Assembly (NCBI GenBank): GCA_964188305.1
Contig: OZ076886.1
DNA: 64,000 nucleotides
Direction: 5' to 3' (one strand)
DNA from: Podarcis bocagei
Taxonomy: Eukaryota
In this document: in pieces, positions 1-60,367 of the stretch
Numbering within the stretch: the stretch's first letter is position 1
Layout of the letters: each line of letters starts with the position of its first letter
Translations under genes and position numbers: made by a program
The notes under the pieces: generated by a model
Database searches by the model: none
Told to the model about the DNA's origin: nothing
Seen by the model: the letters and a program-made list of their open reading frames with translations, nothing else

Positions 1-1583
1 GCTTGCAACTAGGTTAAGAGCCTCTTGGAATAAAGACAACGTGATGTTTACAGCCGAGTCATAAACCCCCCGATGGTTTGGAGTGACTCGTAATACAGGG
101 TCTTGCTGGTAGGTGTGCAATTTGCTAAGTTTATGTACCGGCAAAGTAAAGAAACAAATTGCCTGGCGTATTTAGCGCTGGCAAGCCTGGAGGGTTGGAA
201 CAGTGGCAGAGAGAGCCAGCTGCCTCCCATCTCCTCGCTTCTCCATGGCGGCAAGCACAGAGGGTTTAGAAAAGTGGAAGCAGGCGGGCAAAAAGAGAGC
301 GGCAAAGAGTCGCGTTGAGAGCTGCCTGGTATTCCCATCTGTGCTCCGGGTTCCACTTAGGAGCTGGGTTAAAGCAGTGCGCAGCCTGATCCCTGTTCTC
401 AAGGCCCGAAGGCCAATCCCGCCTCTTGCAAGAGAACTCGTTCCCATATATGTGCGTTCGTCGGGTGGTTGCGTGTGCTTCCGCACTTGTTTCTACAGGA
501 GGCGTTCAGCTTGCTAGTTTTGCCTCGCCCCCCCCTTCTAGGGTAGCTCCTGTGCCTTTTTTTAAACACCTGTATGGTAAGTAAAAAAATGTGGCATTCC
601 TACTGCCGCCACCGGTTCCTCCCATTGCCCCTCTTGGCTCCAGATTTGGGGAGCAGATTTGGCCCCTTGGTCTCCCCTTCGTGACAACTAAGGGAGACTT
701 GTGCTATGGTGAGCAGGGCTTTGTGTGGCAGTGCAGGCACCACCCTGTGGCCACAGCTCTCTGCAATGCAGGTGGGTGGCACTGCAATCCATTGGTCTGG
801 TTTATACATCAGTGTGAATACCCATGTGAAACGACCATATTTTCTCTCGACATTTGCTAGGTTTTTCTCGTTGAAGCCTTTGGCCGTGTCCTATCATTAC
901 TAGCCATGTGGATGAGGACTAAAAGACTCCTCTAAGTATATTTAACGGCATTTGCTCACATTCCTCTCCTCTCCCCCTTTCTAACTAATACTGTCAAAAT
1001 TTAGATTGCTGCTTCATGGGGGCAGGGACCTGCCTCCTTTTTTTCTTCTTAAATCAGCGCCGTAAGGGTTCCATGTACAATGATAGTGCTGTATAAATGA
1101 TTAAAAATGTATGCAAGCTTCCAAGCGCGTCGTGTTTTTAATTAAACGTTAAATTTGCATATACCTGACATCCTACATCGCATTTAAATGACTTGCATTA
1201 TAGTAATATACTAGTCCGGGTAAATCTTACTTTGCGTCATCAGATTGCAGGTGTTATTCAGCTCAGTTTTACTCATGGTAGACCCACTGAAATTAATGAG
1301 CACGACTAGGTTAGGTCTGTTAATGTCAGTAGGTCCACTCTGACTAAAGTTTGTTTGAACACCGCTCAATATCAGTATTTACAAGTACTGTGGATCAACA
1401 AACATGAAAAAAAGGAAATTCTGCCTTAGTAGCATCATAAAAATGCACGCTATACTTCTGCTTCATTTAGAGCATAATTGGAGATGTTATTTTGATAGGC
1501 ATGAGGGCTAGAAACTTAAAAGCCAGCTGAGTTGAGGCATAGCTTCCAGCAAGCTCCAACACCAACTTGGGATCCTAAGCATA

Positions 1584-1815
1584 CGGTGGTACCTCAGGTT
1601 AAGAACTTAATTCGTTCTGGAGGTTCGTTCTTAACCTGAAACTGTTCTTAACCTAAAACTGTTCTTAACCTGAGGTACCACTTTAGCTAATGGGGCCTCC
1701 CGCTGCTGCTGCATGATTTCAGTTCTCATCCTGAGGTAAAGTTCTTAACCCAAAATACTATTTCTGGGTTAGCAGAGCCTGTAACCTGAAGCATCTGTAA
1801 CGTGAGGTACCACTG
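1584..1815 (+). mobile_element. Tc1/mariner(pogo/Tigger)-type MITE, family A
   Basis: TIR C(G/A)GTGGTACCTC ... GAGGTACCACTG flanked by TA; similar copies elsewhere in the window. Confidence 0.88.
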
Positions 1816-2024
1816 TACAAATCTGCCACAAGGTTCCATGTTTTGAGCACGAAGCTCTTTGTGAGAAGAGAAACCCTTGAGATAAGCAAGGCCAAAAAAG
1901 TACACTGAGTCTGGTTCATAGCAGGATTGAGAACCAATAGGCTCTTAACCACAGATGTCAAGGGAGAAGGATTGTTCCTCTGTTGTGTGGGAGGTTAAAA
2001 TTCTGTTGAATACATTTATATTTA

Positions 2025-2250
2025 CAGTGGTACCTCAGGTTACATACGCTTCAGGTTACAGACTCCGCTAACCCAGAAATAGTGCTTCAGGTTAAGAACT
2101 TTGCTTCAGGATGAGAAAAGAAATCGGGCTCTGGCGGCGTGGCAGCAGCGGGAGGCCCCATTAGCTAAAGTGGTGCTTCAGGTTAAGAACAGTTTCAGGT
2201 TAAGTACGGACCTCCGGAATGAATTAAGTGCTTTACCTGAGGTACCACTG
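2025..2250 (-). mobile_element. Tc1/mariner-type MITE, family A (inverted relative to 1584-1815)
   Basis: TA-CAGTGGTACCTCAGGT ... ACCTGAGGTACCACTG-TA; internal sequence is the reverse complement of the other copies. Confidence 0.9.
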
Positions 2251-5200
2251 TATTTTCCTTTCCACCACAGCACATCCTTTGCATGCCGAAGGTTCCAGTT
2301 CCAGTCTCTGGCATCTGAACAAAGAGCAGGGAACATTGGATAGTGGAGACCTCAGCCTGAGACCCTCAAGGACCACTGCCAGTCAGGGCAGACTGTGACT
2401 TGACTTGGATACTTGAGATTCCTGCATTGCAGGGGGGTTGGACTAGTGACCTTGGGTCCCCTTCCAACACTTTATCATTTTGTGAAATAACAGCAGAGGG
2501 CTACAGCATTGGGGTCCTACTTGGGACTCCCCAGTGGCATTGTGTTTGCTGCTGCTGGATACAGGATGGTGGAGAAGATGAGTTTTAGTCTGATTTGGTG
2601 GGACCTGGGGAACCTGGTGTCAGGAGCTCGTCCTACACGCAAGTAGGACTGTTGCAGAGACACATGCTGCCCAACTGGCATGTTCTGTCTCTCCTGGTCG
2701 ATCGTTCAGGAGCTTCATTAGCTTTCTTCAGCCCAAACATCATAGCAACCGATGCCAACAGACATTGGCACACTTAGGGATCTGCAGAGTCTTTGCAGCT
2801 TGGGTGACAGACCTCAGCATTTTGGCTAATCTACTTTATTTACATATAAACACACACGGAGCACTGCAACATGGCTCCCTCTCTCTCTAGCATTGGACAG
2901 CAAAGAGAAAAAACAAAGGACAATAGTCCCACTTCATGGAACACAGTAACACAAACATCCTGTCTCCATCACCCATCAAAACATACACCGTCATGTGATA
3001 GACAAAAACCCCATGACTGCAATCATGGAGCAGGAATTCTAACACCTGGGTGGTGGGCCCCAGTCCCCTTCAGACCCACCCAGTAGTCTGGGATGAGGGC
3101 AGTTGTAGTCCAGAAACATTTCATAGGCCTCAGGTGTTCCCACACACCCCATCCCAGACTTTGGCAATAGCGGACTAGACGGACAAATACTTTGTGAGGC
3201 AGTTTCTGGGTTCATATGACCAGGCGGTGAAGACTGCTGTCTATCACCTCCCCGCCCCCCAATATGAATTTAAGTTGTTGATGGAAGACCCAACATGCCT
3301 GATGACAGTGAGCAAGGGTATTTTTCACAGTGGTCAGCCCAGTGCTCTCAAAATAACCTAATTGTCCAGCATGTACAATGCCTTTTCGGCCACCAGGTGC
3401 CGCTGTCTGTCCCCTGCTTTGCCACAGACATGGGGAGCAGCTGTGCCAGTTTCCTGTTCTCCACATCCTGGTGGAGGAGGGAGGCTGGACTGTTGCATTA
3501 TGGGGCCTGATATAGAAACAGGGTTGTGGCGGCTGCTTCTCATTTTTTTCTTTTTAAAGTGGGGGATGGGACTTCCAAAATCTCAGCCTACCGGAAGGCA
3601 GCCTCATGTCCCATTGCGCCAATGTTAAGTGTTACTACATCCTGCAAACGCAGACAGGGAATACCGAGATGGGAAGGGAGTTTTGGAGGGCCTAAGAACT
3701 AAAAATACAAGACTCTGGATTTGTGGGTCTTGAGTTTAGACGTAACGCAGCCAGGACTTGCCGCTGGGTGACAAAGCAGATATTTAGTAGGTAGGTAAAT
3801 TTTACACACACACACACACAACATGCAGATGGTAAAAATCATTTGCTGGTTTTGTGAGAGTCACGTAGCTCTGAAAAACAGCAGCCCTGCTAGAAATCAA
3901 AAAAGGTGGATTGCTCTATCGTGGATGCAATATGGAACACCATATATGTGCATCTACACACCCTACTGGCAAACTGGAGTTCTCCACATTGCAACATATC
4001 CCTGCAGTTCCCACTTTTTTCTCCCTGTCCTTGATTGTTACAGGATCTCCTTTCCTTAGTGGCAGCAACTGCAGAGGGAAGGTTGAGGCCCTCTCTCAGT
4101 GCCCACCGAACCCAGAGCTACCGGATAGCTACGCCACCTCTGTCCCAGCACAATCTACAGCAAAAGGGAATCGGCCTTGGCTAGAGCCACATGGCATTGC
4201 CAAACAGATCTTCTCTCCTCCCCTGCCACCAGCGCTTTCTCCGTACGTGCCTTTTAATTTGCGAGCCTCTACCATTTCTGTTTGGCACCCATCGCTGGCG
4301 CTGTGTACTGAGTTTTAATTGCTCTGACCCATTTCGGGGAAGCAGTCCTGGTCTGAAAAGAGGGACGAAAATACAACTATGCAGCCAGGGGCACGCTCGT
4401 TAATTTCGCCAGGCTTAGGTGAACGCAGCTCGGCTGTGCGGCTTCCTGCTCTGCAGCAGACAGCTCTGTGTTTAGCTGGCTCCCATAGTGGGGGAAGGTG
4501 GGAGGGGTGGCAAACTAATCTACGCAGACACAGGAGAGACGGTGGCTGAGAAAAGACTTCCTGGAACTGCATCCTGCAAATGTATCTAAGACACTTCATA
4601 TGACCAGAGCCACACTTGGCTTCTCTTCAAATGCAAGCAGACTAGCAGCCCATCTAGATCAAGAATAGATAACAGAGTATGACCCACATAAGGTACAGAG
4701 AGTCTAGGGTACCAGACCAGGACTCCTCACAGACAGAGATGGGTGCTGCTTATATTAACACACCTGTGGCCTTGCAGATGTTGTAGGCAGGATTCTCATC
4801 AGCCTCACCCAGGTCATAGACAAGGTGCGCTGTTGTCCCACAGCACCTGAAAGTCCACAGATTCTCCATCTCTGCCCATGTGGAGTCCTGGTCCTGTACC
4901 CCAGCCTCAAAACCTTGTACCTCTATATCACTCTAACTGATGTTGTTTTTAGTGGCTGGCAAGTCCTCCAGAGCTGCCAAAGCTATCTTGACTTTCCAGA
5001 GGCGTAGCCCTTTTAGCCTATTGCGGCGAAAACAATGGAGACTTGTGTGGCACCTTAATGATTAACACATTTACTGCAGCATATGTTTTAATGCACTGCA
5101 AAATTTGATACTGGGCTTCCTCTGAATTCTGCGATAACATATTGTCAACAGGCAAAAGGGCCTATTCGGGATGGAGCACTTGAAATGAGCACCTAAGGCC

Positions 5201-6287
5201 ATTGCACCCAAGGGAGCTCCTCCGACCATCACTTTTTACTCCATTGTTGGTACAGAACTGGTCTCGATCTCTCCCCAGACGCGTTCCCTCCCTTCTTTAA
5301 AAAGTGCTGCTCCTCATTTTTAACACGAAGCTTTGTGAGAAAGGGCGGACGGGCGTTAGAAAAGGATGTACGCCCAAATTCAGGCTGCGCAAGGAGAGCG
5401 GCAGATGAAATTACTATGTGCACAGCACCGCCGATGTTTATAGAGAAGAAAACCGGCCCTTCCCTCAGAGGATTTCCTACTCTCAGGGAAGGCAACCTGT
5501 GCAAAGAGGGGGGGGGATTTTTTTGGGCATGTGTGTGGACAGGGTAAGCTACAAATTATTAGGGCCGCCAAATCTTGTGCACGCTTACTTGGGAACAAAT
5601 CCCGGCTAATTCGGCAGGGCCCCGAGTAAATACGTGCATTATAGGCTTCGGCTACAAGATCGGGGGGGACGGGACGTGAGGCGATGCAGAGCAGGCAAAG
5701 ACAGTCGATCCTGGCGTGGGGAGGGCAGCAGGCGGACGGTAGAAAGACGAGAGGACCGCCGCCGCCGCCACAATAGGGCTTATTGGCAAAGCCCGCATTA
5801 CATCCTGCAGCAGTGCGAGCCGTAACCTGCCCTAAGTAACGAGAGCGCTTCCAGCCTAGCACACACCCCCTTTCCTGGCGCGAATCTCCCCTGCAGTCAC
5901 CCCCGCCCGCCTGCAGCCCAGCCACCCAGGAGGAGGGTGCATGCGCCGTGTTGCAGCCAGCTCTTCCTCCCAGACCGGTTCTTCGGCGCGCATGCACAGA
6001 AGCGTCCTCCGGAGCCAGAGCTGAGCCCGGCCCCTCCCCCCCAACCCCGCTCCCATGCCACGTGTCCCCAAGCAGCACTTAACCCCACGTGGGACTGGCT
6101 AAAGACGAGCCAATCGGAAGATTGCCTCGCCCTTGAGCACGTAGAGCAGCAGACCCACGTGCGCAGAGGCGCGGGCAGCAGCCGAACTGGCCCGAACAGC
6201 TTCTCTCTCTCTCTCTCCTCCCTATTATAGAACCCATCCACCCACCGCACCCGCACTGCTCTGAGCCGGGGAAAGCTGCCGCGCTTG

Positions 6288-6295
6288 CTTTTATA
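6288..6295 (-). promoter_or_regulatory. TATA box (TATAAAAG) of a putative divergent transcript
   Basis: Plus-strand CTTTTATAGCC reads GGCTATAAAAG on the minus strand. An Inr-like CTCAGAG lies ~33 nt downstream (A at 6262). Confidence 0.55.
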
Positions 6296-6559
6296 GCCTT
6301 TGCCGAGGCTGACGCGAAGCTGAGTGGCGTTTCCAACAACCAATAGAGCAGCGGCTGGGGCCGCTGGGGCTTACAGGGGGACGGGATGGGGGCGACCGCC
6401 AGCCCTAAGAGAAGGGGCCCAATAGGAGTCGGGAGAGGCGGGGGCGGGAGGAAGAGCGGAGGGGGTGGAGATCGCGCGGAAAAGCCGGCCAATGAGTGGG
6501 GCCGGGGGGCGTGGCTGGGGCGCCCCTGGCGCCAGCGCTGGGAATCCCCGTGCGCTCAG

Positions 6560-6738
6560 TGCCGTTTCCGCCCGGCCTGCTGAGGAGGAGCTGTTGGCTG
6601 TTCGCTGGTGCCGCGGAGGGGGAGGGGCCGCGGCCGCTGCTCTGTGGAGCTTGAGCTCTCGGTCCCGCCTGCCGCCTAGGAAACACCGTGGCGCCCAGCA
6701 GGGCCTAGTGCCGGGGGCCCGGGCAACGGGCCGGACAG
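6560..6738 (+). other. SETD5: Probable non-coding exon 1 of SETD5 (5' end approximate)
   Basis: Lies just downstream of the conserved promoter core and ends at donor CAG|GTCAGC (GT 6739). Contains AGGAAACACCGTGGCGCC, similar to mammalian Setd5 exon 1 as recalled. Confidence 0.6.
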
Positions 6739-9700
6739 GTCAGCCAAGGCAAATGAAGAGCAGGAAAAAGGGGGCGTGTGGGGTGAAGAGGGGACACCCG
6801 TTCAAAAGGCGGGAGGCGGGTGGGAAAGAGACCCATGGAGGGGGAGGGGCGGGAAACTTATGGTGGTGGTGAGGGGTTGTTTCTCGGTGGTCCTTCCTCT
6901 GCTCCAGCCCCTTCTCTCACCGCCTCCTTTCAAGCTCCCGCATCTTTCCAGCTGCCCCGGAACTCTCTCCATGCATTCTCTGCCCTGCTGTGGGGGGTTT
7001 AGGGGTGTGGGGGGCGGGGAGGGCGAGGGAGAGAGAAAAGCACCTCAGCCTGGCTCTTCCAGGGGAAGTGGAGCCTCTCCCGCATGTCGGAGGGGAAAGA
7101 AAGAGGTCACACTCCCTGGCCTGCGTTGGACACCCCGGTTTCCCTGCACCTTTGGAGGCATCTGGATGTGAAGAGAGGGGTGCGTGTGAATGTATATACA
7201 TATACATATACGTGTGTGCATATATATCTATATACATACATTCACACGCACTCCTCTCTTTACATCCAGATACCCCCAAAAGTGCATAGGTGTGTGTATA
7301 TATTTCTATATACCTCCCTTTTTTGTGTGTCTGTGTGTGTGTGTGTGTGTGTGTGTATGTGAGAGATTGGGGGTGCGTCCATGAGTGGGAATCCCCGCCG
7401 AGGGCTTCCCGCAGGGAGGGAAGGTGGTGGGACTGTTTTCCATTTCGCTCCCACCCATCCCCCACCTTCCTCGCCGTGGGGGGTGCGGGTGAGCTTGCCT
7501 GGTGCCAGGCGCTGGCGGAGAGCGGGGGCGTCATGGCGAACCTGCGTGTCTGGTCCTGGAGGGGGTGGGAGGGAGAGTGGCCTGTGTGTTGTGAGAGGGA
7601 GAGAATGGGTGGTGGGGGAGGGGTGGTAGTCTGAAGGAACCTCTGAATTCATTCCTGTTTCGGGTTCCCAGGCAGGATTCTCTCGGTGCAGTGTGTATGT
7701 GTGCGTGTGTGGAGCAGGGTCGTGCTGGAGGTGGGGAAGTAGCCGGTCCAATCTTCTGTGGAAAGCCTACTGTGAGAATGTGGGAAAATCCCTTTCTGGG
7801 ACGATGGCTTCCACTTCAAAGCAGCTGTTTGCCAGGAAAGGGTGTGTGTATGTGTGTGTGCGTGCGACCGCCCGTCTGTGCTCCTCTGTGAGTTCACCAT
7901 TGCCTCCCCTCTGCTTCCACCCCTCCTCCTCCATGTGCTGAAGCAGCTTCCCCTGAGCTGCTGCTGCTGCTCCTTCCCTTCCCGCCCCCTCCCTTTCCTC
8001 GGCTGTCTGCTTCTGACTTGCTGGCTCCTTCAGGCAACGGGGGAGGAGGTGTTTGACCTGCATTTTCTGCTTTCTCATGGTGCTTGTGTGGCGATGGTGG
8101 TGCACTTTAATAATCCTCTTCTCCTTTTCCCTTGCCTGCTGCTGGAGGCTGCAGTATGGACCCCCTCCCCCAACTTTTTCATTGTCTGACGTGTGTGCTC
8201 TATCAGGGTACTTTTTTCGGTTTTCTTGCATTGATCTCTGCGTCTTAAGTGGTAACACAGCCCCTTGTAAACACAATAATAGTGCTGTGGGCAAGGTCGT
8301 CATAGTCTACCCCCACTCTTCCCTTTAGCAGCTTGTCCTTGGGGTGCCAGTGGCCAGCTACTTGAAACAGAGCTGCCTTGAACTGAGACAAAAATCCTTT
8401 TTACAGTTTTGGGGAATGGTTTGTTTAGCAATCTGGGAAGTGGTTGGTGAGGTTAGAGAATGTCAGGAGCTTCTTCCTTGCAAAGTACCTAGCTGAGAGA
8501 GGTTTTGGTCTCTGCAGTTAACCAGTGGGGTCTCCTGTACTGTACTTCAGGCAGCAGCCCCTATGCTCAGGGAGATTTTTGCAGAATGGAACAAAATATG
8601 CTATTGGGATTCCTTTTGCTGAGGTTGGTGTTACTTTAAGGAGATAATGGCCCTTGCAGTGTGGCCTCCTGCAGTTTCTCTCCCTGGCCCATTATGTAAT
8701 TGGAGTATTTAAGGCTCACTCAGGCAGAGGCTGTGGGCAGCACAATGAATTGGTTTTGTATTGTAGGGGGATGGGGCCATGGCCTCAAAACCCATGATTT
8801 TTGGCAGTGAAGACATAGGCCTGATTGCAAAAATGTTTTCCAAATGAGCTGTCAACACTTGAGGATATGGGTTACAGACTAGACAAAGACGTACTACTTC
8901 CTTAATGGCGTTCAGGACTCTCCCTTTTCACCTATGAAGGTGACATCAGGCAGTCTGCCCCATCCCCCCCTCCAGCTGGCCCAGGAAGTCGGTTTTGCTA
9001 GCTATGTCTTGCAGCGCAGAGGTGACCGAGGTTGTTGCTTTGCTTTGGATCCTGTGGGTGAACGTTCAGAGCGTTGACAAGCAGCTAATGTTGGCTCTGG
9101 AGCTCTGGTTGCTACGTGAGAAGCTTCAGTAGTGTTGGCTGCTGTCTCCAGGGAAGGACAGCAGCACAACCTCCATTAGTGCTGCACTTAGGAGATGGCT
9201 GGTTCATGCACTGAGATGGGACTCTTCTTTCTGGGGCATGCAAGCTTTCAACTAGGATGATGCAAATTGAGTTTTCACCCATCTCTGTCACAGTCTTTGG
9301 GACTGCTTTTAGGATTTGGCCTGAATATCCAGGGATGTCTGTCTCCTTTATAGCCTTTGCAATTGCAAGAACTGATCTGATCTTTCTGAAGTGGGAGATG
9401 CAGCACTGTGATTACAGTTTGTCTGACTTTAGCTTCCCTTCCAGTAAATCAGAGAGCCAGATGCTTTGCTTATTGTTTGTAGGTCTCTTTCCTCCCCTTA
9501 CATTGCCTGGGCCCCATTTGCCTTATTGACAGGAATTTCTGCTTTGTGCAATGGGTGTGTATAGCAGACACTAGCCTCCTAGCGCTGAGAGGATTTTCCA
9601 TTCAGAGAGTGCAGTCAAAATATGACACATTTTGCAAGTGGCAGCAGAGCCCATTTGAAAGAATGGCCCCTTCCAGCTAGGTACCTGGGCAAAGCATACA

Positions 9701-33755: not shown

Positions 33756-33859
33756 GTTTCCCCATGTCCGTGACGTGTTGGCCGAGGCTCTGCGGCTGCT
33801 CCCCGCCCTTGGAGCCGCCAGTCGCTACCCTTTGGACTCCGTGATCCCTGACAAACGTC
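33756..33859 (+). other. SETD5: 5'-UTR part of the first coding exon (contains uORF 33764-33844)
   Basis: Pyrimidine tract and acceptor TTTCCCCTTGGCAG| at 33755; continuous with the ATG at 33860. Confidence 0.8.
33764..33844 (+). CDS. Upstream ORF, 26 aa: MSVTCWPRLCGCSPPLEPPVATLWTP*
   Basis: ATG 33764 to TGA 33842-33844, same frame as the SETD5 ATG and ending 15 nt before it. Translation is not demonstrated. Confidence 0.6.
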   Translation: MSVTCWPRLCGCSPPLEPPVATLWTP

Positions 33860-33930
33860 ATGAGCATTGCAATCCCTCTGGGAGTCACCACACCAGATAC
33901 ATCTTATTCAGATATGGCTGCTGGATCTGA
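33860..33930 (+). CDS. SETD5: SETD5 coding exon 1 (MSIAIPLGVTTPDTSYSDMAAGS)
   Basis: ACGTCATGAGC start context; donor GA|GTAAGT; 71 nt, phase 2. Confidence 0.96.
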
Positions 33931-36659: not shown

Positions 36660-38358
36660 GTGAGTACCGTCTCTCTTATCTGCAGCCGACTCATCTATTT
36701 TACCCATCCCCTCTCCCTGGCTTGTGCATGATTGAGCTGTATATCTTCTTTGAGGACGGCAGCATTGCCAAGTAACACATGGGCACTGAATTTCTAGCCC
36801 CGCGTTTGTGTTTGTTTAGTGCTTGCAGACAACTTACTGCGAAAGGGAAGTATGGAACTAGAACAGCCTAGTAAACAAGCCCACAAAGTTACTGCATTTC
36901 CAGAAAATCAGCCGGCATGAGAACATAGGCTACCCGCCTCTTAGCAAGACAGTGTTAAAAGAAAGCTTTCTGCCGAGGGAGCTGGCAAGAGGAGTGGTCT
37001 ACCGCTCTTCCGCCGTGTGCCAGTCACAGAGGAAGGGCTGCCTTTCCACTGTGACCAGCACAGAAGGCAAACTGGCTGGTGGAGGAGGAGGAGGACAGAG
37101 TGATGGGCCTGTTCGTTCACCTGCATTGAATACCTGGCCTCCTTTGCCTGCCGAGTGAGTTGTTAAATGCAGGCTTGGACTAGAAGGTGAGGGGGGCATC
37201 TCTTTTTCCCTTTTTGGTCTTTAGCACTGACTGCTCATAGAAACTACTACCCAGGGTAGACCTACCGATTGCAGGTAGATTTTTCTAATGAAGTTCCCCT
37301 CGCCCCTCCCCCAAAAGTGTATTGATAAGCCCCAGTATTTTGAAAGTTGAAAGCATAGGTTTCAGAATCAAGCCAGTTTGAAAGACAGCTTGCAGTTTTT
37401 CTGTGCTTAACAGTGCAGAATGCTTGCATACACATGCAGGTCTCTGCCTTAAGAAAAGCAAGAGGGACCTGCAAGGAAATGTTATGGTGTGGAGTGTGCT
37501 GGCTCAGGTTTTCAGCTGTCCCATTCCATCGTTTTTCATTCTCCATCACTGCCACCCTGTCTACACCTGTCAGCCAGCCAGTATTTCGTGCCCATCGAGA
37601 ATGCTCAGTCCTCACAGGATGGTTTGGGGCATTTTTTTCCATTTTGGGGGTTTGAGGAGGTGGAGTGGGTATACTTATGCTGAACCCCAAACACATTAAA
37701 TTATTGAATTTCTCTGTCAATATCTGTGAGCAGCTCTCATTCCAAACTTGGGGACAGTTTAAAATAACTTCTTTGAACCAGAAAATGACGTATCCAGACA
37801 TTGAGATGCTTATTTCTACCCTATACATATGCATACATACTCTGTCTTCTGGTTCCAGACACTCCATTCTCCCCCTGCATCCCACCCGGTTGCCATTTTC
37901 ACCCCTTAGTCTCCACATTTTGTGCCTTGAAAAGATAGCATAGAGCTGTTTGAGGCGTTTTCCCTGCAGATTTTTTTGGTACTTGTTGCAAGCCCCTGAT
38001 TTCCTCTGAGACTGCTGGTACTTCTTTCTTGTGTGTGGGTAGTGTGGTTTTGTTTCCATTAGCACAAGCATAGGTAGTTCAAATCAGTGTTAGTACATTT
38101 TGCTAAGACGCCTGGATATCAGGGCTTTCTTTATCTGTGGTTGGACTGAGAAAACAATTGCTCCGCCCAGTTTTAGAGAGAGTTCAAAGTTGTAGGTCCT
38201 TGCTCTGTTAGCCAGAGTTCCTGTCGCTCCTCAAATCTGTGCATGTGGTGGTGGGTAGGTTTTGGAAGTGTCTTAGGGCTCACATGTTGTGTAAAGTCAT
38301 GCCTCTTGCTCTCCTCCCCCGCATTCAAAATAAAACTGATGCAAATGTTTGTTTTCAG

Positions 38359-38570
38359 GATCATAATTACGGAGCCCCTCCTCCTCCGACCCCTCCTGCT
38401 TCTCCCCCTGTCCAGACCATCATCCCTCGTGCAGAACTGAATGGCCTACACTCTCATGATGAGGAGAATTCTGGGGACACAGAGAGTTCTTCAGAAGCAG
38501 AGTCTATTCCTAGCTGGTGTCACTGTAGTCTCTCCCAAGATGGTTTCCTCATCAAATGTGAGAAGTGCAG
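38359..38570 (+). CDS. SETD5: SETD5 coding exon 3 ([10 protein letters not shown]...[18 protein letters not shown]); alternative acceptor at 38416
   Basis: TTTTCAG| acceptor and internal in-frame TCCAG| acceptor; donor AG|GTAAGT; encodes DHNY motif and degenerate half-PHD. Confidence 0.95.
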
Positions 38571-39366
38571 GTAAGTTCTTGCCTGTAGGCAGCTTCATAC
38601 ATGGGAAACGAGGGGGGTGGGGAGAATGTTTAAAGAGGCTTCCTGATTGCTCAGTGGACCATTTTCTTTACCTTCAATTGGTCACTGCAGCAAAGGAGCT
38701 GACTTACACAAAATCAACACGCACATTTTCACAATCCAGAAGCCAAATCCTGCAAGTTCATCAGATCAAATAAATAGTACCAATGTCAGATTGTCTAAAA
38801 GTGATTTGTTTGAGCTGACCAAATGCAGTTGGTTAAATAATCATACCTTATGCTCAGTGGAGTGTGTCTGAAACTCTCCATGAAGTTAGGTGCTTCTAAT
38901 GCAATGGTGAAAGAGTAATAGCGAAGGAGAGGTGGAACTTCTTCAGAGATTGGCAAGCAGCAGAAGGGGGCTTGGGGGTCATAAGGAACATGAGATCTGA
39001 TGTCTTTCCACTTTCCTGTCCTTCCAGGCCATCACTGGTCCAGGGCATTTCAGTGGCTCTGCTTTCACCCACTGTAGGCTTATTTCCACACATACGAGAG
39101 CTAAGAATGTGGTCTTTCTGAAACTTGAAAGATGGGGCTCTTGAGAACATGAATATTGCACTGGGCACACAGCCCATTATTTGCTGAAGCGATGGCCTTG
39201 GACGTGAATGTGTGAAGCCGAGACGTGGCCATTAAATTCATTTTAACTTTATATAACACTTTGATGTCAGGTGATCTGGTGTTCCGCTGAAGACCCAAGG
39301 TTAATTTATTTTAAGCAATATAACCCTTAATAATGCCTACTTTTGGTTTCTGTTGCCCTTTTGCAG

Positions 39367-45536: not shown

Positions 45537-46475
45537 TACCCCATGGCTGTTGAAAGTGAAGTAAAATGGCAGCAGCTCAGATAACAGCAGTTCCTTTTCA
45601 TCCTTGAACCTAAGAATAGACAGACAAGAAAAGAAGAGAGGTTAGTCAACATGAGGAAGCTTCAAAGGAAGCCTACAGACATAGGAAATGGAAGGTAAAC
45701 GACAATAGTCCCCCCCTTGAATCTTAGCACTGCCTATCCGTGCCAAACAAAAAAATATAACTTGGTCCAGTTAGCCAGTGTATGTATATGAGGGATAGGA
45801 TTGAATAGGGTGGGAGATGAGGAAAAGCTGGCATTTTCCCTAGCAGCAACACTAGCTTGTTGCTTGTATCACTGTTTTGAATCCCCTGGAGCGTATATTG
45901 CCTGAACAGCCATCTTTTTATGTTATTCTAATGGCCACTGCTACTGCTTCTTTCTTATTTCCTGCTAAAACCGATATGAGCGGCACACACTTTCATCGGT
46001 TGGGCTTCTGTAGCCTTGGAAACAAGGTGCTTTCTTGTCACGGCCTTTAAAAACGAAACAGTGTCCTTTAAACGGTTATACAGAGAAGTGGAATATTCAT
46101 TATCAATTTAAAAACAGCAACAACCAAAGTTTGATTCAAAAGGCAGAATCCAAAGCACAGAATATCCTGAGAGGAAGGTACAGTTGAGGAAGACCTAAAG
46201 TTGGGGGGGGGGGTTAGGAAGAAGCAAGTGAGAGATGACTTAGCAAGCAGTTTAATGACTTAAGTATAAATGTGGGGGGGGGGGAGACAGGGGTAACACG
46301 CATTTTAATCCTAGGCACCTAATATTTCCACATGACCATGCTGTTCTGAATTGCAATTGCTTTGAGATCAGTGTATTCTGAGTTGACAGAGAACTAGCAC
46401 CCTGTGTTCCGTGTGGTCAGTGCTCAGGCAAGTTGATCCACGAGGAATGGAGAGCAGGACATTATTGGGATGTCT

Positions 46476-46820
46476 ACTGAAGGAGCGTCTCCACCCCCAT
46501 CGTTCTGCCCGGACGCTGAGGTCCAGCACCGAGGGCCTTCTGGCGGTTCCCTCATTGCGAGAAGCAAAGCTACAGGGAACCAGGCAGAGGGCCTTCTCGG
46601 TAGTGGCGCCCGCCCTGTGGAACGCCCTCCCACCAGATGTCAAAGAGAACAACAACTACCAGACTTTTAGAAGACATCTTTAAGGCAGCCCTGTTCAGGG
46701 AAGCTTTTAATCTGTGATATTTTACTGTATTTTTTGTTTCTATGGAAGCCGCCCAGAGTGGCTGGGGAAACCCAGCCAGATGGGCGGGGTACAAATAATA
46801 AATTATTATTATTATTATTA
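46476..46820 (+). mobile_element. 3' end of L2-clade LINE
   Basis: Encodes ...RTLRSS..LLAVP..RAFSVVAPALWNALP..FRRHL, a typical L2 ORF2 C-terminus, then 3' UTR and (ATT)n tail. Confidence 0.88.
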
Positions 46821-56562: not shown

Positions 56563-58633
56563 GTAAGTTGGGGGGCAGGATGGCAGCTTTCCCTGCAGAC
56601 CTAGGATGTATGCATCAAAACTCCTTGGAAAGACACAGGTAGACCTAAGAAACGAGAAGATAGGTTTTTTAAAGAATCCTGTGTATTCCGAGAATTTGGC
56701 ACCTGCAGATTATAAAGTCCCTATTCTCCTTTATTGTTATGCACAGTAGATGGATACTAGAGTGTGCAAAGAGTTACAGGTTACCAGAAACACTATTCCC
56801 TGCCCTCTGGTTCACTTAATCTCAGCTTCCCTACCCCAGTAGTATCCAGAGATGCTGTCAGCTTCTGGGCTGCTGCTCTCCTGCATTCACCTCTTAGCAA
56901 ACTCTAAGCTTTGGAGAACATTAGCTGTATTGCATCCCAAGAATTCCCCATCTGCATGATGTGTTTCCTGTTCTTCTTACAGCCATTTGCCTCCCCCTTT
57001 CAAAACTTCTGTAAACCTTTGTAGTGCAATGCAGGTGTGAGTTGTGCAGGTAGCCTCAGTTTTGCAGTTTCCCTCATGACAAGCACGTGCCAGTGCTTTC
57101 ATTCTGAAGCATCCCATTTTCTAACTTTTTATTGTGTCCCATATTTGTGCTTTGGGTGGAGTTGGCGCTTCCGATTCCCATTTTTCAATATTGGGCCACT
57201 AAACTCTTTAGGTCTGCTGCTGCCCCTTAGCAAAACTCCCTGGAAATGTCTATTCTTATGAAAGTTGAGATGACCACAATTTGGGATTCTGGACTTTCTG
57301 CTATTCTCAACTTTCTGCATAATTGTATGGGCTTTGAGTCTGGGCTGTGCATTTCTGTACACATAAGAAAACGCTATTGTACCGAGACAACCCAGACTGT
57401 TGGAATCCAGATTCTGCAGCTTCTAAAACGGTGCAAATCGGAAGCCTTTGCATGATTTCTCGTTCTTTGCAGAACTCTACTTCTGTTTATTTTTTATTTA
57501 ACGAAATGTATGTACCGCTTGATTGTAACATAACCTCTAAGTGGTTTACAAGGAGGATTTATTCTGCTGACTGGGATGGCAGCTCTTAAGCCGCTTTAAA
57601 TCCTGCTCACCAGCAGCCCTGACTCCTAAGATTCCATCAGGCATTGCCCACATATTCTCAAGTGTAGCTTCGCAACCATAGTTGCTCCTTTGGAAAAAAA
57701 AAAAAAGAGAGAAAAAAAATTCTTAAGCTGAATTCTGTGGCTGGTGTCCTGTGGCTTTTCTATACTTCCATATAATTGTAGCATTTCCACCACCGCGATT
57801 ATGGCCCTGCTGCTTGAGCGCAAGTAGGTTGGTCATTATACAGTGCCTGATCATTAATTTTGCTTACTATCCAAATGGCAAGATCCCCAATCACTTTCCC
57901 AGTGCCTTTGGATTCAGGTCTCGTGGGCTCTTGCACAGTTAGGCCACTTCCAGTTCTGCACGGAAACAGAGACAGGACTCGTTGGGCTGGGGGAAATGCA
58001 GAATCGTGGTGTTGCCAGAAGCCACAGAAACTTGAGTGGCCTTAGCTGCACCAGTCTTAGTGAGACAGTGGCATGGGATGTCACTAGGACTTTGTATCTT
58101 GAGACTGGACGTTGGTCCCAATTTGCACTCCTGATTTGAAGCAGCACTTAAGGAGTGTTGGTCATAGCAAACTTCAGTTGGACTTCAAAGGTTTCTGCCC
58201 CGTGTAAGAAAGTGAGCGGCTTCTGCTGCTGTATGACTGAGTTTTCTGCCCACCTGCCCCTCTTTCTGTGTGTTGCAGGGAAAGGAGCCTTTCAATGTGT
58301 TAAAGTTTCTACCACCCATTCTCCCCAGTTTCCCTGTGTTGAGGCTTCCCCTTTTCACACCATTCCACTCATTCATGACACGTTATTTATGTTTCCTTTA
58401 AATTATTTCCTGCTGCATTTCTGCCCGATCCATAATTGTCTTTTTAAAAAAGGAAGAAGCAAGTTAAATAATAGTGCATTGTTAAACAGCAGATAGAAAT
58501 AGTTCAAAGCAGCTTGAGCAGCCATCAAGTTGAGCCTACCTCCTATAAAATCAACAGTGAAGCTATAAAAAGTTACAAAAAAACCCTCAACCACACAAAA
58601 ACAAACACAATAAAAAAATAGCCCAAAGCGCTA

Positions 58634-59023
58634 AGGGCCTTCTGGAGGTTCCCTCACTGCGAGAAGTGAGGTTACAGGGAACCAGGCGGAGGGCCTTCTC
58701 GGTAGTGGCACCTGCCCTATGGAACGCCCTCCCAGCAGATGTCGAGGAAATAAGCAACTAACTTACTTTTAAAGGACATCTGAAGGCAGCCCTGTTTAGG
58801 GAAGTTTTTAATGTTTAATGCTGTATTGTGGTTTTAACATTCGCTTGGGAGCCGCCCAGAGTGGCTGGGGAAACCCAGCCAGATGGGCAGGGTATTAATA
58901 ATAACATCATTCTTCTTCTTCTTCTTCTTCTTCTTCTTCTTCTTCTTCTTCTGTTGGACTATTTTGACTGTTGTTAGCCGCCCTGAGCCCAGCTTCGGCT
59001 GGGGAGGGCGGGATATAAATAAA

Positions 59024-60237: not shown

Positions 60238-60367
60238 NNNNNNNNNNNNNNNNNNNNNNNNNNNNNNNNNNNNNNNNNNNNNNNNNNNNNNNNNNNNNNN
60301 NNNNNNNNNNNNNNNNNNNNNNNNNNNNNNNNNNNNNNNNNNNNNNNNNNNNNNNNNNNNNNNNNNN
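60238..60367. other. Assembly gap (130 N)
   Basis: Run of N. Confidence 0.99.

Follow-up and report, generated by a model that had tools for sequence, protein, structure and literature searches.

This locus raises the question of whether a lizard carries a counterpart of the promoter that is called ROSA26 in mammals and, if so, how much of the mammalian arrangement surrounds it. In mouse the promoter goes by the name of Gt(ROSA)26Sor and in human by that of THUMPD3-AS1; ROSA26 has also been described in rat, pig, rabbit, sheep, cattle, goat, ferret, and hamster. In the mammalian layout, THUMPD3 lies beyond ROSA26, and the 3' end of THUMPD3 overlaps the ROSA26 long noncoding RNA. According to PMC4099177, one bidirectional promoter serves both ROSA26 and SETD5 in mouse, human, and pig. 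No description of a ROSA26 orthologue in a reptile was found in the literature. The DNA analysed here is a stretch of 64,000 nucleotides from Podarcis bocagei, hereafter the window. An earlier note on it, which compared a minus-strand string with a mouse Rosa26 promoter sequence, had claimed that positions 6485-6575 are the squamate orthologue of the ROSA26/SETD5 promoter core, a deeply conserved amniote element that would mark the site for ROSA26-type knock-ins in lizards.

A 50-nt block shared with the mammalian ROSA26 promoter

Two published supplements provide the mammalian side of the comparison. The mouse, rat, and pig rows are those of Supplementary Figure S1A in PMC4099177 (ROSA26 promoter and exon 1; mouse, rat, pig, human), an alignment used as machine-read text in which some letters are dropped and whose human row was excluded from all comparisons. 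The sheep Rosa26 sequence comes from the supplement of PMC4827023 and is cleaner than the PMC4099177 text. Mammalian identities given below are to be read throughout as identities to machine-read supplement text with dropped letters.

The string quoted in the earlier note is real: it is present on the minus strand, inside 6485-6575. A 33-mer from the mouse/rat/pig promoter alignment finds its sole match in the 64 kb at 6539-6571 on the minus strand, with two mismatches (31/33); no match was obtained in 100 dinucleotide shuffles. The surrounding 50-mer (6571..6521, minus strand), which we call block A, constitutes the conserved core that the locus shares with the mammalian ROSA26 promoter. It is identical to sheep at 46 of 50 positions, the remainder being three substitutions and one gap, the latter probably a letter lost in the machine-read text. 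An alignment widened to the 85-nt sheep segment running from block A to the first CCAAT box has 88 columns, of which 73 are identical; its local score is 99 against 22.8 +/- 3.1 (sd; maximum 34) for shuffled queries (z about 25).

With a G+C content of 65-71% and recurrent short GC-rich motifs, the region is the kind of setting in which two unrelated G+C-rich promoters might come to resemble each other by chance. We consider the probability of this negligible. The shuffle controls refute it, with 0/100 and, for the second block described below, 0/300 shuffles reaching the observed matches, and the local score stands far above its shuffled distribution; in addition, the blocks are collinear, their spacing is kept, and the orthologous gene adjoins them. 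The mouse sequence given in the earlier note agrees with the published one, and the significant alignments to the mouse/rat/pig and sheep texts bear out the claim of orthology. Judged by its sequence, block A is orthologous to the core of the ROSA26/SETD5 promoter of mammals.

Other searches with the block were negative within their scope: it had no match in the cattle and rabbit ROSA26 supplements, a full-text search of the literature with its 12-mers returned nothing relevant, and no spurious open reading frames called across it were found in other species. Degenerate patterns run against metagenomes and genomes gave a single match, on a bacterial contig of 60% G+C, which was rejected as a chance match. 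Separately, a 16-nt motif (GGAAACGSCACTSAGC, minus strand) occurs twice with 88% identity, at 6554-6569 inside block A and at 6319-6334 beside the third CCAAT box.

SETD5 and the architecture of its promoter

SETD5 had been placed beside the element, and its coding exons do lie on the plus strand from 33756 onwards; from these identified exons it follows that the gene is directed away from the block. The first coding exon occupies 33756-33927, with an acceptor, coding sequence starting at ATG 33861, and a donor, and SETD5 exons are recognisable in plus-strand stop-free frames from 36.5 kb to the end of the window. Pfam gave a weak SET match on one SETD5 exon. When the exon at 38212-38571 served as the query of a word search, the matches comprised a protein named as SETD5-like and numerous exon or transcript fragments without a name; the search also led to a transcript contig (L001) that encodes a 1328-aa protein 87-93% identical to the listed mammalian SETD5 proteins. 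The promoter core is located ~27 kb upstream of the SETD5 start codon, in a head-to-head layout as in mammals. Mammals also have a long SETD5 5' UTR intron: the 10-kb upstream flanks of the armadillo and mouse loci lack the block because that intron is longer than the flank. The leaders of L001 and of a further transcript contig, L003, are only 40-53 nt long.

Several other features of the gene were recorded in passing. Among the fragments returned by the word search, the exon at 38212-38571 is conserved from fish to mammals. Intron 1 of SETD5 contains a TA/CA-rich simple repeat that includes 7198-7239, and an interspersed repeat is present in two copies in SETD5 introns, at 46411-46683 and about 58561-58769, with a plus-strand frame that reads ...RAFSVVAPALWNALP... 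A run of 130 N at 60238-60367 adjoins a (CA)n/(GT)n microsatellite.

The whole promoter is held in a CpG island at about 5600-6800, where 200-nt windows have a GC content of 0.60-0.71 and a CpG observed/expected ratio of 0.69-1.04, versus 0.33 for the whole window; this is the only promoter-type CpG island in the first 40 kb. Near 6500 the AT skew switches sign, as would be expected of divergent transcription. Sequence homology, a position in front of SETD5, and the CpG-island context are directly established for this stretch.

Along the plus strand, the elements follow in the order CCAAT box (6489), GT box (6507), block A (6521-6571), block B (6680-6707), and splice donor (6738/6739). The motif scan places the first CCAAT box at 6489-6493, the second at 6419-6423, and the third at 6340-6344, all on the plus strand; the mouse/rat/pig and sheep texts likewise have three in the corresponding stretch. 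The first of them is contained in CATTGGCC (6493..6486, minus strand), and block A and CATTGGCC start 77 nt apart in the lizard and 78 nt apart in the mouse row, as counted from its printed position numbers. In between, the stretch CACGCCCCC (6514..6506, minus strand) forms a GT/GC box of SP/KLF type (6506-6514; GGGCGTGG at 6507-6514 on the plus strand) that aligns with sheep ACACGCCCCC. Block A itself contains a candidate kappaB/Rel-type decamer at 6540-6549, palindromic and identical in the mouse/rat/pig text, and, at its SETD5-proximal end, an ETS-like CGGAAAC on the minus strand (6564-6570; CGGAA at 6566-6570) that is identical in the mammalian text. GGCGCC was found at 6519-6524 and 6528-6533.

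All transcription-factor assignments in this analysis are consensus matches only, and on that footing the labels given in the earlier note divide. The ETS core, the GC (here GT) box, and the CCAAT box were recovered by the scan, and the kB-like label stands as a consensus match to GGGRNWYYCC on both strands at 6540-6549. The E2F-like label fell away, as TTTSSCGC has no match in 6150-6800, and so did the ZNF143-like label: beyond the 7-mer TTCCCAG, the 18-nt SBS consensus has no match at <=3 mismatches in the window.

An initiator-like CTCAGT on the plus strand (6555-6560, A at 6558; matching BBCABW) also lies inside block A, followed by the ETS-like motif. Read along the plus strand, it follows the CCAAT box by about 65 nt and the GT box by about 45 nt, and this spacing makes it a plausible candidate for the SETD5 start site. 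Further along, block B (6707..6680, minus strand) is a second conserved block, collinear with block A and identical to the mouse row at 23 of 28 positions, a score reached by none of 300 shuffles; an 18-mer from it, allowed three mismatches, is unique in the window (0.01 expected). Block B is probably inside SETD5 exon 1. The predicted donor of that exon is ACAG/GTCAGC at 6735-6744 on the plus strand (cut 6738/6739), which aligns with sheep GGACAAG/GTAAGG. From block B to this candidate donor, the alignment with sheep is modest, and 3/300 shuffles reach its score.

Taken together, these features suggest how the promoter might work. A fixed array of sites—three NF-Y CCAAT boxes, the SP/KLF GT box, and block A with its CGGAAAC, Rel/kappaB-type decamer, and GGCGCC repeats—would keep a nucleosome-free, unmethylated region open in all tissues, and ubiquitous factors bound to it would drive SETD5, by analogy with the homologous mammalian stretch. 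In the mouse promoter, a deletion from exon 1 to -228 abolishes basal activity and a deletion only to -60 leaves high constitutive activity; mouse-human identity is unbroken down to -228, and a CCAAT box lies at -56 (PMC3484877). By sequence, the mouse stretch from -228 to -60 contains block A, the GT box, and two CCAAT boxes. In the lizard, SETD5 transcription would probably start in or just after block A, at CTCAGT (A at 6558), and the transcript would run through block B to the donor at 6738/6739 and be spliced to the exon at 33756.

Alternatively, block A, block B, or both could be conserved at the level of RNA, as a structure or upstream open reading frame in the SETD5 5' UTR or as a protein-binding site in the mRNA, rather than as DNA sites. 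Block B, and possibly block A, would indeed be transcribed if the start site lies at or before 6558. The predicted exon 1 (6558-6738), however, folds less stably than its shuffles (-88.8 versus -95.8 kcal/mol, z +1.46), the two C/G differences in block A are not mutually complementary, and no Rfam family was matched in 1-7190. We therefore hold an RNA-level explanation to be very unlikely.

On its plus strand, block B has a GGAAAC...GGCGCC arrangement that mirrors the minus-strand GGAAAC...GGCGCC of block A. SETD5 is a haploinsufficient chromatin regulator. One could imagine block A as a composite element spanning the start site, nearly unchanged since the amniote ancestor, on which a specific, unnamed combination of factors sets SETD5 dosage and couples it to a divergent RNA, its mirrored arrangement with block B being part of a two-way switch. 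Such a scheme seems to us improbable.

The side facing ROSA26 exon 1

Past the first CCAAT box, in the direction of mammalian ROSA26 exon 1, the sheep sequence has no significant alignment with the lizard. What is kept on this side is layout only: CCAAT boxes, TATAAAA, an initiator, and a GT donor. The TATAAAA box (6295..6289) is on the minus strand and points towards lower coordinates, at the place where the pig and sheep texts have CCTAGAGAAG. Downstream of it by 33 nt is an initiator-like CTCAGA (6260-6265, A about 6262, minus strand), and minus-strand GT donors follow at about 6249, within about 15 nt of CTCAGA. CTCAGAG is also found in pig and sheep ROSA26 exon 1, just ahead of its donor. 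We accordingly label CTCAGA and the GT donors a predicted ROSA26-like first exon, and the TATAAAA box and the initiator at about 6262 would be suitably placed for a divergent ROSA26-like transcript towards lower coordinates, which is likely to exist on the evidence of these motifs.

The claim of a deeply conserved amniote element consequently holds in part. It stands for the SETD5 side, represented by blocks A and B, and it does not extend to the ROSA26 exon-1 side, where alignment is not significant; as that side keeps layout only, the deeply conserved part is the SETD5-proximal one. The same pattern fits a narrower interpretation in which the stretch is a promoter of SETD5 only. Blocks A and B would then be a core promoter spanning the start site together with 5' UTR, divergent activity would amount at most to unstable upstream antisense transcripts, and, with no stable ROSA26-like RNA, there would be no ROSA26-type intron to target. 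Significant conservation limited to the SETD5-proximal side, and an exon-1 side that is not significantly alignable, are what this interpretation leads one to expect. Synteny points in the same direction. In 1-5600, neither THUMPD3 nor any other coding-like open reading frame or Pfam match was found, though the gene could sit beyond the window. In the chicken genome, THUMPD3 and SETD5 are not neighbours (PMC10290409), so that ROSA26-type synteny is already broken there and should not be assumed in sauropsids.

Against a promoter of SETD5 only, a consensus TATAAAA is present 33 nt upstream of an initiator, and the three CCAAT boxes, CTCAGAG, and a GT donor close by follow one another in the same order as at mammalian ROSA26 exon 1. 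We regard the narrower interpretation as a real possibility, but not the favoured one. The explanation that we prefer, with a probability of roughly 0.8, is that the stretch represents the CpG-island promoter core of SETD5, orthologous to the mammalian ROSA26 promoter, and that a divergent minus-strand RNA is likely.

Relation to known promoters and value as a landmark

The lizard element resembles mammalian ROSA26 in its 50-nt core, the spacing of the GT box and first CCAAT box, the CpG island, and the head-to-head arrangement with SETD5, as well as in having three CCAAT boxes, a TATA-like box, and CTCAGAG ahead of a donor. It differs in three respects. Blocks A and B are separated by about 109 nt in the lizard and by about 230 nt in mouse; the TATA box has the full consensus, unlike the CCTAGAGAAG of pig and sheep ROSA26; and the exon-1 side, as described, is not significantly alignable. 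Generic CpG-island bidirectional promoters of the NF-Y/SP1/ETS kind also have CCAAT boxes between divergent start sites, a GC box, and an ETS core, and they share with the lizard element the absence of methylation-type CpG depletion. Unlike them, the lizard element contains a 50-nt composite block that is unusually deeply conserved between the two main branches of amniotes.

The nearest precedent outside mammals is the chicken safe-harbour candidate "cROSA" (PMC10290409), which likewise carries the ROSA26 concept to a sauropsid. Its site is upstream of THUMPD3 and was picked without sequence similarity because chicken SETD5 is not adjacent to THUMPD3; the lizard anchor is sequence homology at the SETD5 promoter. 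The chicken study, the only sauropsid attempt that we found, relied on loose synteny. At the present locus, the position equivalent to ROSA26 in an amniote outside the mammals is marked by sequence. By its sequence, the element is the expected orthologue of a known promoter rather than a new type of element, with a strikingly conserved 50-nt core. The conservation would show in any vertebrate genome alignment. In evolutionary terms, what is called the ROSA26 promoter is the core promoter of SETD5, and the part kept through all of amniote history is the SETD5-proximal 50-nt block. For knock-ins in lizards, the minus-strand region just below about 6250 is a candidate site to try; the idea of a safe harbour there is a sensible lead rather than an established result.

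Finally, some minor features surround the promoter core. Two inverted-repeat pairs, 6345-6365/6623-6643 and 6299-6313/6739-6753, form near-symmetric flanks; in the second pair, the right arm starts at the predicted SETD5 exon-1 donor and the left arm abuts the TATA box. Both may be chance matches in G+C-rich DNA. On the minus-strand side of the CpG island, 5930-6165 contains three CACGTG E-boxes, an ETS core adjoining a CCAAT box (CTTCCGATTGGCT), and two NRF1-like motifs of the GCATGCGC type, all within the first intron that a ROSA26-like RNA would have. A similar CTTCCGG...GATTGG pair is present in the sheep text downstream of exon 1.
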